Positions 8,897-14,253 of a stretch of 64,000 bases of DNA are shown in pieces. Under the pieces are notes generated by a model. It made no database searches. It worked only from the letters and a program-made list of their open reading frames with translations, and had not been told where the DNA came from. Source of the stretch: Orbicella franksi (Eukaryota); the NCBI GenBank assembly GCA_964199315.1, contig OZ116704.1, positions 8,804,001-8,868,000 of the forward strand, written 5' to 3'. A program made the position numbers and the translations under genes. Each line of letters opens with the position of its first letter. Positions within the stretch are counted from its first letter, which is position 1.

Positions 8897-11800
8897 TTAC
8901 ATGGCTGCTTTGCTCTTGAATCCAAAAGTAAGTTTCTGTCGATTGTTCCTGTTTTTGTTCAGAATGAGGTCTTGTGCAGCTTTTTCCTGCTTTTTGATTT
9001 CCCGTTCCAGGGACATTTTCTGCTCAGTTAGCGTTCTCCTTTCTTCGACCATCGCCAAACGCTCTTCTGCCTGCATGACGAAGGGAAAGAAAAGAATGAA
9101 AATAATAAAAATGTGTTCTATGAAATGATTTAATCATCCTGCCCATTTTAATCCTGATGGCAAGCAGGCCAGTTGATTAGCATACATGTATGGTAGAACA
9201 GGGATTTCAAACTCTCTTGAACAAAGACACCTTACTTGTTACACAAACAGATTGCTATATTCATGGTCACTGACAATCTAAGAGATGCTCATCCAAAAAA
9301 AAAAAAAAAACCAACAACAACAACAACAAAAAAAACAACATAACATTTGAAATTTCACTGGAAACTTGGGTATAAATATCGCAAATGGGGATCAACAAGA
9401 AACAGGAACAATGAAAATTTCCCCCAAATGTTGTAATTCCATTTTCTACAGCCTTAATTCTCTCCCGCACCTCCCACCAAAAGTTGAAAGTAACAAAAAT
9501 AATTAATCTCTCTTTCTGACCATTATAAAATGTTAGAGGATTTTGTAACCATGGCAACTTTATTAACCCCTTTGCTGCAGACTTTTGTTTATACCAAAGT
9601 TCAGGTGTATGCGTTTGGTCTACTTTCTTCATGCATATGACCGAACTTTTGTTTCTATGCTGGACATTTTCAATAGGCCCTCCAAGTAGTAAAAGGGTCA
9701 ACTAACAGACATCTCCAGGGTAAAATCTGCCATTAAGAAAATGGGGCACACCTGGTGCAAGATCAGTGATTGTGGGGGAAACTGAATTTCTTAACTTCCT
9801 CTAACTCTTTTCATTGGTACATTTTTGCTGTCTGTCAAGAAACACTATGTACTGTAGATGTTCTGGAAGCAGTTGTAGTTAAAGTGTTTCAAGTGTTTTT
9901 GAAACATTATGGTGTCGTTTAGTGTCATGAAAATTTTCAGTTAGGCTGTGACTGGAGTAATAATTACTCCAGCCACAGCCTAACTCTATATGTCCCAGCT
10001 TTTATCACTGAAATCAGTTTCAATATATTCAGTTAAGTTATAGAAATTGCAGGACACTGAATTCCCACACAACACTATAAATTGAGCCACATTTGCGCCA
10101 TTTTCAACATGGTGGATTTTACATTAGAAAGGTCTACAAGTGTAGATCAGTAAAAACAAACCAAACTTGACCACTGATGCAAGATTATTTCTTCCTGCAG
10201 TGTGATGAAATAGAAGTACAATTTCTTTTAGTTTTCAAAAGACTAAAGCTAAAGCAAATATAGATAGAACTGATTACTAAATACATTATGCACAACTCAA
10301 TGTATTCATGTTCAAAACCCAGAAGCAAATGGATTCAATTTAGCCAGTATTAAGGCCGTTTTGCCTCAGGGTTCACTAATGGCAAGCTCACTTACATCTG
10401 TAGACCAGATAGAAGATCTGTTACTTTTTACTCACTTACAGAATGTGAAATAGTGTTTTCAGTCCCTAGTGTTCTAATTCTACTAATATGAGACATTAGC
10501 AAACTTGTCATTAGTGAAAAAACTTGTTGGCAAAACGACTGGTTACCCTTAGCCAACATGAAACAAAACCCAAGCAATCAAAAGTAATGTCAATTATGAT
10601 GTAATGTAAATAAATGCCAAATATCAAGGAGGAAAAAAATCTTTGAACAGGTTTGAATTGTATGTACTCTAAAGCCTTACTTTCAGTAGGATTGAATGCT
10701 AACCTAGAATGGTTACAATTTTGCAGAACTGGCCAATCAAAGACTCAACAGAAAAGTGCAGTGCTTTCAGGAAGATTTAAATTAGGTGCCAGCCCTGGTG
10801 CAAAAACTGTCAGAGGGCAATAAGAGATGTGCATGACAACTTCATCTAGAGGGCTAATTTCTGAAAACTGCTAACATTATAGCTAGCGATTTAAAACCTT
10901 CAGAAAATGTTGTTTGTACCAGGTATACTGGATTACAAAGGACACCAAAACTTCCATTTGTGTTCCAGTGCACTGTGACTTTGCATTTTTTTTTTGTGAT
11001 GAAAACTTTTGTAGTAAGGTTTCATTTCAAAATCCTGTGAAATCCATTATGAAGGTAAGGCTTAGAGTTCACAGAAAGTTAAGTCATTACATGGAACTAT
11101 CCAACAACCTGACACAGTGATTTGCATGAATCTACGAACATCTCACAACTAGTAGGAAACGTACCAGTTTTTGATTGGCATCATCAAGTTGTTTTTGAAG
11201 TTCATCAACTTTGTTCTCAAGAAGATGAATCTTACGACGCTCTTCTTCCTAGAAAGGAAAATAGTTACCATTCAAGATATGTCTTTCAACATATTTTCAC
11301 CTTTTTAGCATGGTACTGTACCACACCAAATACATCACTTACAAGGATGTTATCTGGTTTATTCTACCACCACCATCAAATAAGTTTTAGTAAGAACAAG
11401 ATGGAATGGCACCAAAATTCAGAACTTTTATTGTTCCCTCTTATGGAAAATTGTCGCTAAAATGTAAAGGTAATGATACTTTTCCAACAACAACGACATA
11501 CTGTACTAAAATACAAGCCAGTCCAGTGACAACAGAAAATGCAAGGCAAAACAGCAAATGCCAAGAAATTTTGGTGCCCTCCCTGTTTGCATTAGCCATG
11601 ATTATAACAATTCTTTCTCTGATAGTATACCACATTGTGATACATGTACAAGTTCAGTTTTTCAATCAAAGCAAATTGAAACAGCATCTTACCAGTTAAC
11701 ACAACACAGTCACAAATCTTGCATAAATGTACATTTGTACACTTAGAAAATGTATGCCTACAAATTGCTTCATGAAGCACATAAACCGCGGTTTGATACC

Positions 11801-13496
11801 AGTCATACATACACATTTCCGCCTAACAATTCCTATGAAATGCTCCAAGCAAAGGCTCTGCGAAGAAATCCTTCAGAGTCTGTGAAGACTTGAACTCTCC
11901 CAGAAAGTTTCACTTATTAGAGGTGGCTCAAGGTGGAATGTTCCTACGAGAGGTGCGCTAAATAATTTTTCCATTAGATGAAAGTTCCTAAACTTTGAGC
12001 AATTTCAAAAATTGCGCAGTTCTTGAAAGATTGCAGTCTTTTGTAAAACTCTGAATGTTTGAATGTCAAGTTCAAGTTCAAGGATTTATCGGCACAAGAG
12101 AGAGTTAAGAAGGTTTAAATCCAAATGCTTGGAAAGACTGACTGTTCTTGACAATGTTTTCCTTCTGAACTGAATCGCCACCGGAATCTGTGGAAATAAT
12201 CTGAGTGTTTGCAGAAAAACGACACACATTCACAAGCAAAAAAAGACCTCTGGACAACAAAAGGCAGAATTGAAGGGAATCTGTGACTGTTGGTTATAGA
12301 ACCCCTCTACATAGCACCAATTTTATTCCTGTGCAAGTGAATCATATGAACAGTTGACATGGAAATTTTACAATCAGAGGGAAAAAAATACAAGACCTTT
12401 TTCGTTCTCAGTCACACCCCTTTGCCATCAGTCTAGAACTTGAACTTCCAGACATAAGATAATAATTAAATTCTTCACCTCTTTCATCTGCTGTTCTTCA
12501 AGTTGCTCCTGTCGTCGTTTTTCAAACTCTTCAACCATCTGTTTCTCCATAACACTCTTGGCTTCTTCGACTCTTTTCATAACTTCAGCATCAATTTCAT
12601 CTTTCCTCTTTGCAAGTTGCTCCTCAACTCTCTTCGCAACAAGTTCTTCAACTCGCTTTTGTGTTTCTTCCTCAATGATCATCTTTTCTTTCTCTGTAGC
12701 TCGACTAACAAGGGCAAAAGATCATAAGTTTCAAACCTTGTACAGGGTTCTCATTAATTTTATTGTGACAACTTCAAATTTCTTTAGTTTTTGCAATGTG
12801 ATTGGCATGGTACATGACCAATGTTGACAGGCAGGGTAGGGTGGGGAACATTTTGTTAATGTGATATTACATCACAACACAAACTCAACAACATTTTTAA
12901 CCTGGATTTTCAAGAAAAAACGCCTTAAATTAAGTCAATTTTCAGTACCAGAATTAAACCAATCAAATTATACAAAAGCAGACCTCCGCACACAGACAAA
13001 AAGAACTGAAAGAGGTCTAACAATGGAGTAATTAATGCAAAAGAAACAAGTTCGTTTAAGAAAAAAAAAAAACCTTCACAATAAAGGACTATAAGACCTT
13101 AACACATTTTAAAACAATTCGACACACGTTAATTAAGTCTTAAATTGCACATCCTCAAGCTTGCTCTTACATTTTTCTTTGCCGTTCCATTTCTTGCAGT
13201 CTCTCTTCCTCAAGTTCCTTTCGTTTAGCGGGGTCATCGTCTTTTCTCTTCACTATCGATCGGCCAAATCTATCAACACTAGGAGAACGACTCCTACTCC
13301 TAGAATATCGCTTTTTTCTTCTCGGTGATCTCGAGCGTCGGCGAGGTGAACGATCGCGACTTTTCTTCGACGAAGATGGCGTCGAGCTCGGCGATCTACT
13401 CCGCGTTTTCCGACGATAACTGCGATCTTTCTTGTGTTTTCGACGCGGACTTCCACTCTTGCTTCTTGAGCGGGATTTTGACTCGCTCTTGGGCAT
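8897..13496 (-). CDS. ARGLU1: Arginine and glutamate-rich protein 1, 4 coding exons, 269 aa
   Basis: Exons (minus strand) 13496-13171, 12704-12479, 11248-11165 and 9070-8897 total 810 nt, all GT-AG with phases consistent. The protein has an N-terminal RS-rich domain (SRSRSPRR...), then ERQRKI|R...IEEETQKRVEELVAKRVEEQLAKRKDEIDAEVMKRVEEAKSVMEKQMVEEFE, matching the ARGLU1 motif IEEET.RRVEELVAKRVEEEL.KRKDEIE.EV.RRVEEAK. It ends AEERLAMVEERR...QDLILNKNRNNRQKLTFGFKSKAAM*. Confidence 0.93.
11693..12200 (-). other. Candidate alternative/poison exon inside ARGLU1 intron 2
   Basis: On the minus strand a U/UG-rich tract precedes tandem acceptors CAG (12201-12203) and CAG (12188-12190). Both frames reach a stop within ~100 nt. 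Strong downstream donors are CTG|GTAAGA (11692) and CTT|GTAAGT (11342). Confidence 0.45.
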
Positions 13497-14253
13497 TATA
13501 AAAGACGGAAAAATGGGTTTTAGACGCTGAAATTAACTTCTGTTATACTCATACCACGGTGAAGTAAAATTTATTCTTCATGCTCTGCTTAGTCACCGGG
13601 CCCCTGCTACAGGACAGGGCCACCCCTATCGGGCTCATCTAGGGCTGATCGAAAAGAAAAGTGATTTTACGGCTTGATATTCATACTGGAAAAATTACGC
13701 ATATTCCATAAAAAAAACAGAAGCAATTCTTGATACCTTACCAGAATTATTGTCTATTGTTTAGATACAAGTTTGGACTTCGTCTCAAAGTCCTCTTGTT
13801 TGAAACAAGTTATCCTAACAATGCCCACTCTCGATTTTTGCTCGCCCCAATCTCTACAATACACGTTAGCCTCCAGTAGCGGATCTAGGGGAGGGACCCC
13901 CGGGGGCCCGACCCCTCCCTCCTTATTTTGGGTAAAAAAGAAGTAATCACAGAGGTGCAATCACCATTGTCACGATGTCTTGTATTTTTAATTATTATAT
14001 TTTTGGTCCAGGGCCCCTCTGGCTAAAAGCGTGAATTTTTTTAGCATATTTCCGACGGAAGTGGAAAGAAATTTACCTTATGAGCTGGTTTGTGACTTCA
14101 GTCTGAACCTCTCTAGAGTATTATTGTATGTTTCTTTGCCGGAAATGACAAGCGATTCTTAAAGTCAGTTTGGTTTTCTAGTTGACGAATTACCCGAGCT
14201 TGGGCATACTATGAAATCGCCTTGTTCTCAATACTAACAAGTTAAAAATTGTC

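Follow-up and report, generated by a model that had tools for sequence, protein, structure and literature searches.

The ARGLU1 locus and its second intron

The window analysed here is a stretch of 64,000 nucleotides (nt) from the coral Orbicella franksi (NCBI GenBank assembly GCA_964199315.1, contig OZ116704.1, positions 8,804,001 to 8,868,000 of the forward strand), and its subject is a conserved element in intron 2 of the ARGLU1 gene. An earlier reading of the letters alone (the original prediction) had named this gene and its four-exon layout and proposed that intron 2 holds an autoregulatory poison exon with tandem 3' splice sites. Positions given below are those of the window; the gene and all features described lie on the minus strand, so that higher numbers are upstream, and a slash within a motif marks a splice boundary.

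The identity and layout of the gene are borne out. Four coding exons, namely exon 1 (13496-13171, placed by assembly of the coding sequence, CDS), exon 2 (12479..12704), exon 3 (11165..11248) and exon 4 (9070-8897), form an open CDS of 269 amino acids, with an N-terminus rich in Arg and Ser (RS-rich) and a C-terminus rich in Glu. The Pfam family ARGLU (PF15346) matches exon 2 (E 4.6e-15) and exon 4 (E 6.5e-10). ARGLU1 is a single-copy gene, as this locus is the only place in the 497-Mb assembly where a six-frame search detects the family.

RNA evidence was drawn from reads aligned on 10950-13550, taken from three raw-read runs of polyadenylated (polyA) RNA of a sister taxon (X21, X23 and X24) and from a contig run (X1). 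One study supplied both X23 and X24, as separate samples, and another supplied X21, a stranded polyA run; junctions were listed at a threshold of 3 reads. The junction of exon 1 with exon 2 is carried by 71 reads in X23 and 50 in X24, and the canonical junction of exon 2 with exon 3 (12479 to 11248) by 19, 56 and 44 reads in X21, X23 and X24. The exon 2 donor, GAG/GTGAAG with the exon end at 12479, is the upstream partner both of this normal junction and of the alternative one described below.

Intron 2 (11249..12478) is 1230 nt long, interrupts the reading frame in phase 0 directly after ...QQMKE, and is selectively retained in polyA RNA. Read-through open reading frames (ORFs) of vertebrate genes (P0010, P0012 and P0013) and of arthropod-like ones align with the end of exon 2 at ...RE and then continue with V, encoded by the GT of the donor. 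Because these ORFs break at the aligned ...RE/V, the intron position is common to the coral, vertebrate and arthropod-like genes. The host gene is an ARGLU1 orthologue, and its element-bearing intron is the homologue of vertebrate intron 2.

A conserved non-coding block within intron 2

Identity and variable columns delimit a conserved non-coding block of 449 nt at 11798..12246, a candidate poison or decoy exon together with its 3' splice-site region. Related sequences were collected as contigs whose protein hits read from exon 2 into the intron, and seven further metagenome contigs came from a scan with the pattern of the acceptor core. The collection comprises two contigs of the same species (L006 and L008), at least three taxa at the level of congeners (L007, equal to L011; L010; and L012, close to L009) with exons 93-98% identical, and two distant corals (L003/L004 and L001), in which exon identity falls to 82-87%; one of these two is represented by a Tara coral scaffold. 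The read-through pseudo-peptide of P0003, used as a query for further species, matched only P0003 itself.

Among congeners, identity is 97-98% in the block, 94-98% in exon 3, 93-96% in exon 2 and 84-88% in the intron flanks. Counted as variable columns, the block stands at 6.3%, the flanks at 28%, exons 2 and 3 together at 9.7% and third codon positions at 24%; the difference is highly significant both against the flanks (p 8e-20) and against third codon positions (p 7e-7). In the distant corals the block still aligns at 75-80% identity (blastn E 7e-84), for comparison with 82-84% in exon 2, and the intron flanks are unalignable and differ in length. Polymorphism in the reads of the sister taxon follows the same division: 11350-11768 has 15 variable sites, and 11769-12478 has a single one. 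The conservation that the original prediction had expected of this part of the intron in related species is therefore present, in the form of strong constraint on 12246-11798.

Two places within the block stand out. The first is a sub-block at 11798..11999, the most conserved part of the whole gene (98.5-99.5% identity in congeners, 75-82% in distant corals), in which only 1.6% of columns vary, as against 9.7% in the exons (p 1.6e-4). It contains the longest run invariant among congeners, 63-69 nt (11860-11798), which ends exactly at the GT at 11799-11798; the longest such runs in the exons are 20-23 nt. The second is a 34-nt core at 12186..12219 holding both AGs of the tandem acceptor (12202-12201 and 12189-12188). 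Together with a pyrimidine/UG tract, these AGs form the start of the block. This core is the same in the window, in four congener-level sequences and in L003, and is the longest run invariant across all taxa when L003 is included; both AGs are kept in all six of the other sequences. Extreme non-coding conservation overlapping the alternative exon is thus seen within Scleractinia only, and its longest perfect runs (63-69 nt among congeners, 34-35 nt with L003) are shorter than the at least 200 bp at 100% of the strict definition of an ultraconserved element.

The block is not coding, since in every species each frame is interrupted by stops, indel lengths are not multiples of 3, and codon periodicity is absent (variable columns fall 45, 38 and 44 to the three codon positions). 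The length of the alternative exon modulo 3 differs between species, and in each species examined, translation from either acceptor runs into an in-frame stop, 30-81 codons in. Nor does the block belong to a repeat or mobile element, a candidate rejected on finding a single match to it in its own 497-Mb genome. An Rfam search with the block returned no family (best E 0.56), and folding gave no excess of structure, the block being less stable than 92 of 100 shuffled versions (z +1.52).

One of the distant-coral sequences carries an artefact of assembly at its end. In the Logan contig L001 (1146-1168) the Illumina adapter AGATCGGAAGAGC... follows directly on ...GGAATTGTTAG, at the equivalent of about 11823 in the window, and MAFFT misplaced this adapter onto the start of exon 3.

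Retention of intron 2 and use of the distal acceptor

Intron 2 is selectively retained, in some samples in a third or more of the polyA transcripts. Its mean depth, taken over bins wholly inside the intron, is 47.6 in X23, 27.2 in X24 and about 0.4 in X21; with exon 2 at 122, 79 and about 38, the ratios are 0.39, 0.34 and about 0.01, respectively. Intron 1 has depth 0 in all three runs (four bins inside it, 348 nt), which rules out both DNA carry-over and bulk pre-mRNA as the source of the signal in X23 and X24. In these two runs depth is flat along intron 2, with no local peak over the block. The few intronic reads of X21 are on the strand of the gene. In X1, a single unitig of 1287 nt (11221-12507) runs from exon 3 through the whole of intron 2 into exon 2 at a depth of 93, for comparison with 38 for the intron 1 unitig and 225 for the spliced junction. 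Retention in polyA RNA, as the original prediction had anticipated from the vertebrate gene, is accordingly found in the coral.

An acceptor inside the block is also in use. A junction from 12479 to 12187, with GT..AG at its ends and 291 nt left out, is carried by 3 reads in X23 and 3 in X24, with 3 distinct starts in each; none is listed in X21. It accounts for about 5-6% of the exon 2-exon 3 junction reads and makes 12187 the first base of the alternative exon as used. Translation continued in phase 0 from this base meets its first stop, a TAA at 12086..12088, 33 codons in. Of the tandem pair that had been proposed, it is therefore the distal member that is seen joined to exon 2, bringing the premature stop with it. 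Use of the distal AG is likely explained by a putative branch site in the invariant CTGCAAACAC, which would lie too close to the first AG. A role for the acceptor as a recursive splice site was considered and rejected, as ATTCCG follows and no GT donor is regenerated.

A contig of the same species from JGI, L008 (window 11164-12388), covers exon 3 and the greater part of intron 2 and breaks off no more than one base from the exon 3 donor. Such an edge is what an assembly graph would produce where spliced and unspliced RNA diverge, and hints that the contig derives from RNA with the intron retained.

Splice motifs and the probable end of the alternative exon

The motifs named beforehand are all present as letters. 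The tandem AGs lie 13 nt apart, giving exon starts at 12200 and 12187; in phase 0 a TAA is reached after 31 codons from the first (12107-12105) and after 33 from the second. Two donor-like motifs with 7/9 consensus were to close the cassette, CTG/GTAAGA (11687..11695, exon end 11693) and CTT/GTAAGT (11337..11345, exon end 11343). By themselves, motifs of these kinds occur in intron 2 at chance level, as judged by 500 dinucleotide shuffles: donors with at least 7/9 consensus number 2 against a shuffle mean of 1.6, acceptor-like AGs 6 against 10.4, and tandem AG pairs 2 against 1.5. The site stands above chance because of its conservation and the RNA reads, not because of the motifs.

Seen in this light, the two donors are not supported as cassette ends. 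Neither takes part in a junction of at least 3 reads, and neither is conserved: the one ending an exon at 11693 is deleted in the congener L010 and absent in L003, and the one at 11343 is kept in congeners only and likewise absent in L003. The conserved block, moreover, stops about 100 nt short of the cassette of about 500 nt that had been proposed. Its 3' edge reads ATGTGTATGTATGACTG/GTA, and exactly there lies a cluster of four weak GT donors (11798..11815; exon ends at 11815, 11813, 11809 and 11800). Each has 5/9 consensus, and all four are kept in the five sequences out of five that cover 11815-11800. We infer from this pattern that the alternative exon ends within the cluster, which would give it a length of 375-401 nt, more likely than the longer cassette. 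The resulting anatomy is of the decoy type: both the AG pair, spaced by 13 nt, and the group of four GTs are conserved, and they lie within a retained intron that has no coding signal.

Interpretation and alternative explanations

Taken together, the observations make it probable, in our judgement, that intron 2 of the single-copy coral ARGLU1 is a regulated, selectively retained intron with a conserved non-coding exon of the poison or decoy type. Several points weigh against this interpretation. Evidence for the acceptor amounts to six reads, all from one study and split between two of its samples. Retention is not found everywhere, standing at about 1% in the stranded polyA run X21, and the differences in retention among the three runs are confounded by library type. 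Nor is it strictly confined to intron 2, as depth over the opening 170 nt of intron 3 amounts to 0.15 (X23) and 0.12 (X24) of exon depth; X21 has no reads on these 170 nt. No donor within the intron is joined to exon 3 by at least 3 reads in X21, X23 or X24, so that the cassette is not closed, and an alternative 3' site combined with retained sequence, instead of a cassette, may also account for the listed junctions. The missing downstream junction is weak evidence either way, because there are 3 upstream reads per run and these may be split over several donors. A profile of the coral block (nhmmer with --max, E up to 100) found no match in L013, a vertebrate ARGLU1 contig of 5.7 kb that runs from exon 2 to exon 4.

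A further body of data had to be set aside. Fourteen RNA runs kept as contigs had word shares of 0.75-0.86 in a first search and were dropped as support for retention when the same runs proved to hold the words of intron 1 too (window 12720-13160; shares 0.57-0.89). With intron 1 present, these runs carry pre-mRNA or DNA, and for that reason finding an intron in Logan contig sets cannot count as evidence for its regulated retention. The case for retention was accordingly confined to the raw-read runs and the depth ratio in X1.

Other explanations of the block may be weighed against the same observations. Intronic conserved non-coding elements are often enhancers, and the block could be an enhancer or silencer acting at the level of DNA, with the 12187 junction an incidental product of cryptic splicing and the retention unrelated. 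The rarity of that junction (6 reads) and the spread of conservation over the whole block, instead of at the splice sites alone, speak for this explanation. It is nevertheless unlikely: conservation both begins and ends at splice signals that are specific to the sense strand, the longest run shared by all taxa is the core of the tandem acceptor, and the longest run shared by congeners ends exactly at a GT. Use of the acceptor at 5-6% of exon 2 junction reads is also above the usual level of splicing noise, and in the vertebrate orthologue the element in this intron acts at the level of RNA (PMC5389617). A different kind of function would be a small coding exon within the block, for example a 30-nt in-frame micro-exon at 11842-11813, with the constraint shared between a protein isoform and splicing enhancers. 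In X21, depth arithmetic and the table of read ends point to five reads lying solely on 11812-11844 (33 nt) and fitting ag/CATTTC...AAATGT/gtatgt between exons 2 and 3, a stretch of 30 nt that is in frame and free of stops, and no other part of the gene is as conserved as this region. These five reads, however, gave no listed joint or loose end and start at fewer than two places, so that copying of a single molecule, or a chimera, may account for them. L003 and L001 have the AG displaced by 1 nt, which in these distant corals would leave an exon of 29 nt and a frameshift; over the block there are stops in all frames and no codon periodicity; and nucleotide conservation far above that of the true coding exons argues for constraint on the RNA. 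We regard a coding micro-exon as improbable to a greater degree than a DNA-level enhancer.

Introns of housekeeping genes with conserved blocks sometimes host small nucleolar RNAs (snoRNAs) or microRNAs (miRNAs), and a snoRNA, miRNA precursor or other non-coding RNA processed from the intron would account for a conserved block of this kind. With no Rfam match better than E 0.56, folding weaker than that of 92 of 100 shuffles (z +1.52) and no peak of depth over the block in X23 or X24, such a hosted RNA has very little to commend it. The plainest account would be an ordinary intron with chance splice-like motifs, its reads coming from pre-mRNA or carried-over genomic DNA. Motif counts equal to chance expectation agree with that, as do the many contig-kept RNA runs that hold intron 1 and the near absence of intron 2 signal from X21. 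Yet in X23 and X24 intron 1 shows no depth at all across 348 nt, against 27-48 for intron 2 from the same libraries, spliced reads to 12187 exist, and the constraint on the block is highly significant; an ordinary intron is for these reasons just as remote a prospect as a hosted RNA.

Proposed mechanism

For a regulated intron with a decoy-type exon, a course of events modelled on the vertebrate gene can be envisioned. Parts of the spliceosome would assemble on the competing, suboptimal sites of the block, and this assembly could stall removal of the whole of intron 2, leaving it retained. Alternatively, and less often, the exon would be included, yielding a messenger RNA (mRNA) whose stop precedes later junctions by a long distance, and for that reason an expected target of nonsense-mediated decay (NMD), the machinery of which is represented in the genome by exons of UPF2 and UPF3. 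Retention and inclusion would both lower the amount of productive ARGLU1 mRNA. If, by analogy with vertebrates, where alone this step has been described, the ARGLU1 protein pushes splicing toward retention and inclusion, the result would be a homeostatic loop. Decay by NMD and detention in the nucleus would presumably also take part.

Further observations at the locus

A second conserved block lies in intron 3 (10138-10274, with an exon-like core at 10194-10162). By blastn it is 85% identical over 137 nt in L003, above the exons, and about 100 nt of it are nearly invariant in congeners and in this distant coral. Its anatomy includes a branch-like ACTAAAA, a pyrimidine tract and cacactgcag/GAAGAA...AGTTTG/gtttgt, so that the core would be a 33-nt exon, in frame and free of stops, with a weak donor. 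The block may be a second decoy or a micro-exon.

Two unusual joints were seen in reads over exon 2. One of them (12499-12612) goes back by 114 nt, is carried by 1 read in X23 and 5 in X24, and has 12 letters common to both sides; it is probably due to template switching at a short repeat in this Glu/Lys-rich exon, a circular or duplicated form being possible. The other, a joint at 12704/12480 with 5 letters between its sides, resembles an ambiguous alignment to the end of exon 1.

Comparison with known systems

Homeostatic control of splicing in ARGLU1 has so far been described in vertebrates only, where it depends on an ultraconserved element (PMC5389617), a class of element that is itself said to exist in vertebrates only (PMC5389617). 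A literature search linked unproductive splicing of ARGLU1 to no invertebrate and found nothing outside vertebrates. In human ARGLU1 the form that retains intron 2 is abundant in polyA RNA, and a rarely included cassette within the conserved element brings a premature stop and is stabilised when translation is blocked (PMC5389617). Weak multiple 5' sites of this cassette compete with one another, and strengthening or deleting sites shifts the balance among splicing, inclusion and retention; overexpression of ARGLU1 raises both unproductive forms (PMC5389617).

The coral gene resembles this system (Pirnie et al. 2017, PMC5389617) in several respects. The genes are orthologous, and the intron has the same position and phase, after a ...KE/RE codon. 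In polyA RNA, molecules that keep this intron are plentiful, with the other upstream intron spliced out. A rare and, in the coral, probable alternative exon that brings a stop lies in the most conserved part of the intron, its splice sites are several, suboptimal and competing, and its non-coding conservation exceeds that of the exons. There are differences as well: the coral exon is probably about 375-401 nt long, compared with 58-200 nt in human; conservation in the coral is seen within stony corals only, with a longest perfect run of 63-69 nt; and coral intron 3 is also partly covered and has a conserved block of its own. What the coral gene matches, then, are three features: selective retention of the same intron, an acceptor in use that brings a stop, and a block more constrained than the exons.

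Decoy exons offer a second comparison. They have been described in ARGLU1, OGT, SF3B1 and DDX39B (Parra et al. 2018, PMC6097662), and that of human ARGLU1 promotes retention as a decoy and can be transferred (PMC6097662). Low inclusion of the exon, in the coral a candidate one, together with high retention is common to these cases and to the coral, and by analogy with them the coral block itself may act as a decoy.

For the age of such a circuit, the informative precedent is SRSF5, whose unproductive splicing is conserved from sea anemone to human at a fixed intron in spite of sequence turnover (Lareau and Brenner 2015, PMC4379411). The original prediction went further than the coral and took the ARGLU1 circuit to be ancestral to eumetazoans. 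This we can only infer, because intron position alone is shared and there is no detectable sequence similarity to a vertebrate intron 2. The profile of the coral block likewise found no match by nhmmer in L002, a contig from a more distant cnidarian, a result that says little as L002 holds 277 nt of intron 2. Two JGI contigs with other invertebrate-like ARGLU1 genes, L014 (179-1015) and L015 (404-1684), join start codon, RS region and exon 2 in a single continuous frame and read through ...RE/GT into non-coding sequence for 200 nt and 750 nt. They hint at transcript-like molecules from which the upstream intron has been removed and in which the homologue of intron 2 is retained, an arrangement that fits common ancestry without proving it.

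It is conceivable, and we advance it only tentatively as something we doubt somewhat more than we believe, that a circuit in ARGLU1 intron 2 (a retained intron and an unproductive or decoy exon with feedback) was present in the cnidarian-bilaterian ancestor and has been kept for more than 600 million years while the sequence of the element turned over completely, and that corals may run a version with two introns, the second being intron 3 with its own exon-like block (10194-10162), which is conserved still more deeply. Such a history would parallel that of SRSF5 (PMC4379411), also a splicing-related, RS-rich regulator, with unproductive splicing at the same intron in distant animals and with position kept through turnover of sequence. 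SRSF5 belongs to a different gene family, and for ARGLU1 the direct evidence comes from corals (here) and vertebrates (literature) only. The coral gene offers a compact, single-copy model, with an intron of 1.2 kb and an element of 450 nt, in which to ask what constrains elements of this kind that are neither coding nor structured. It also makes testable now whether feedback in ARGLU1 is as ancient as that of SRSF5 (PMC4379411) or has evolved repeatedly at the same intron.

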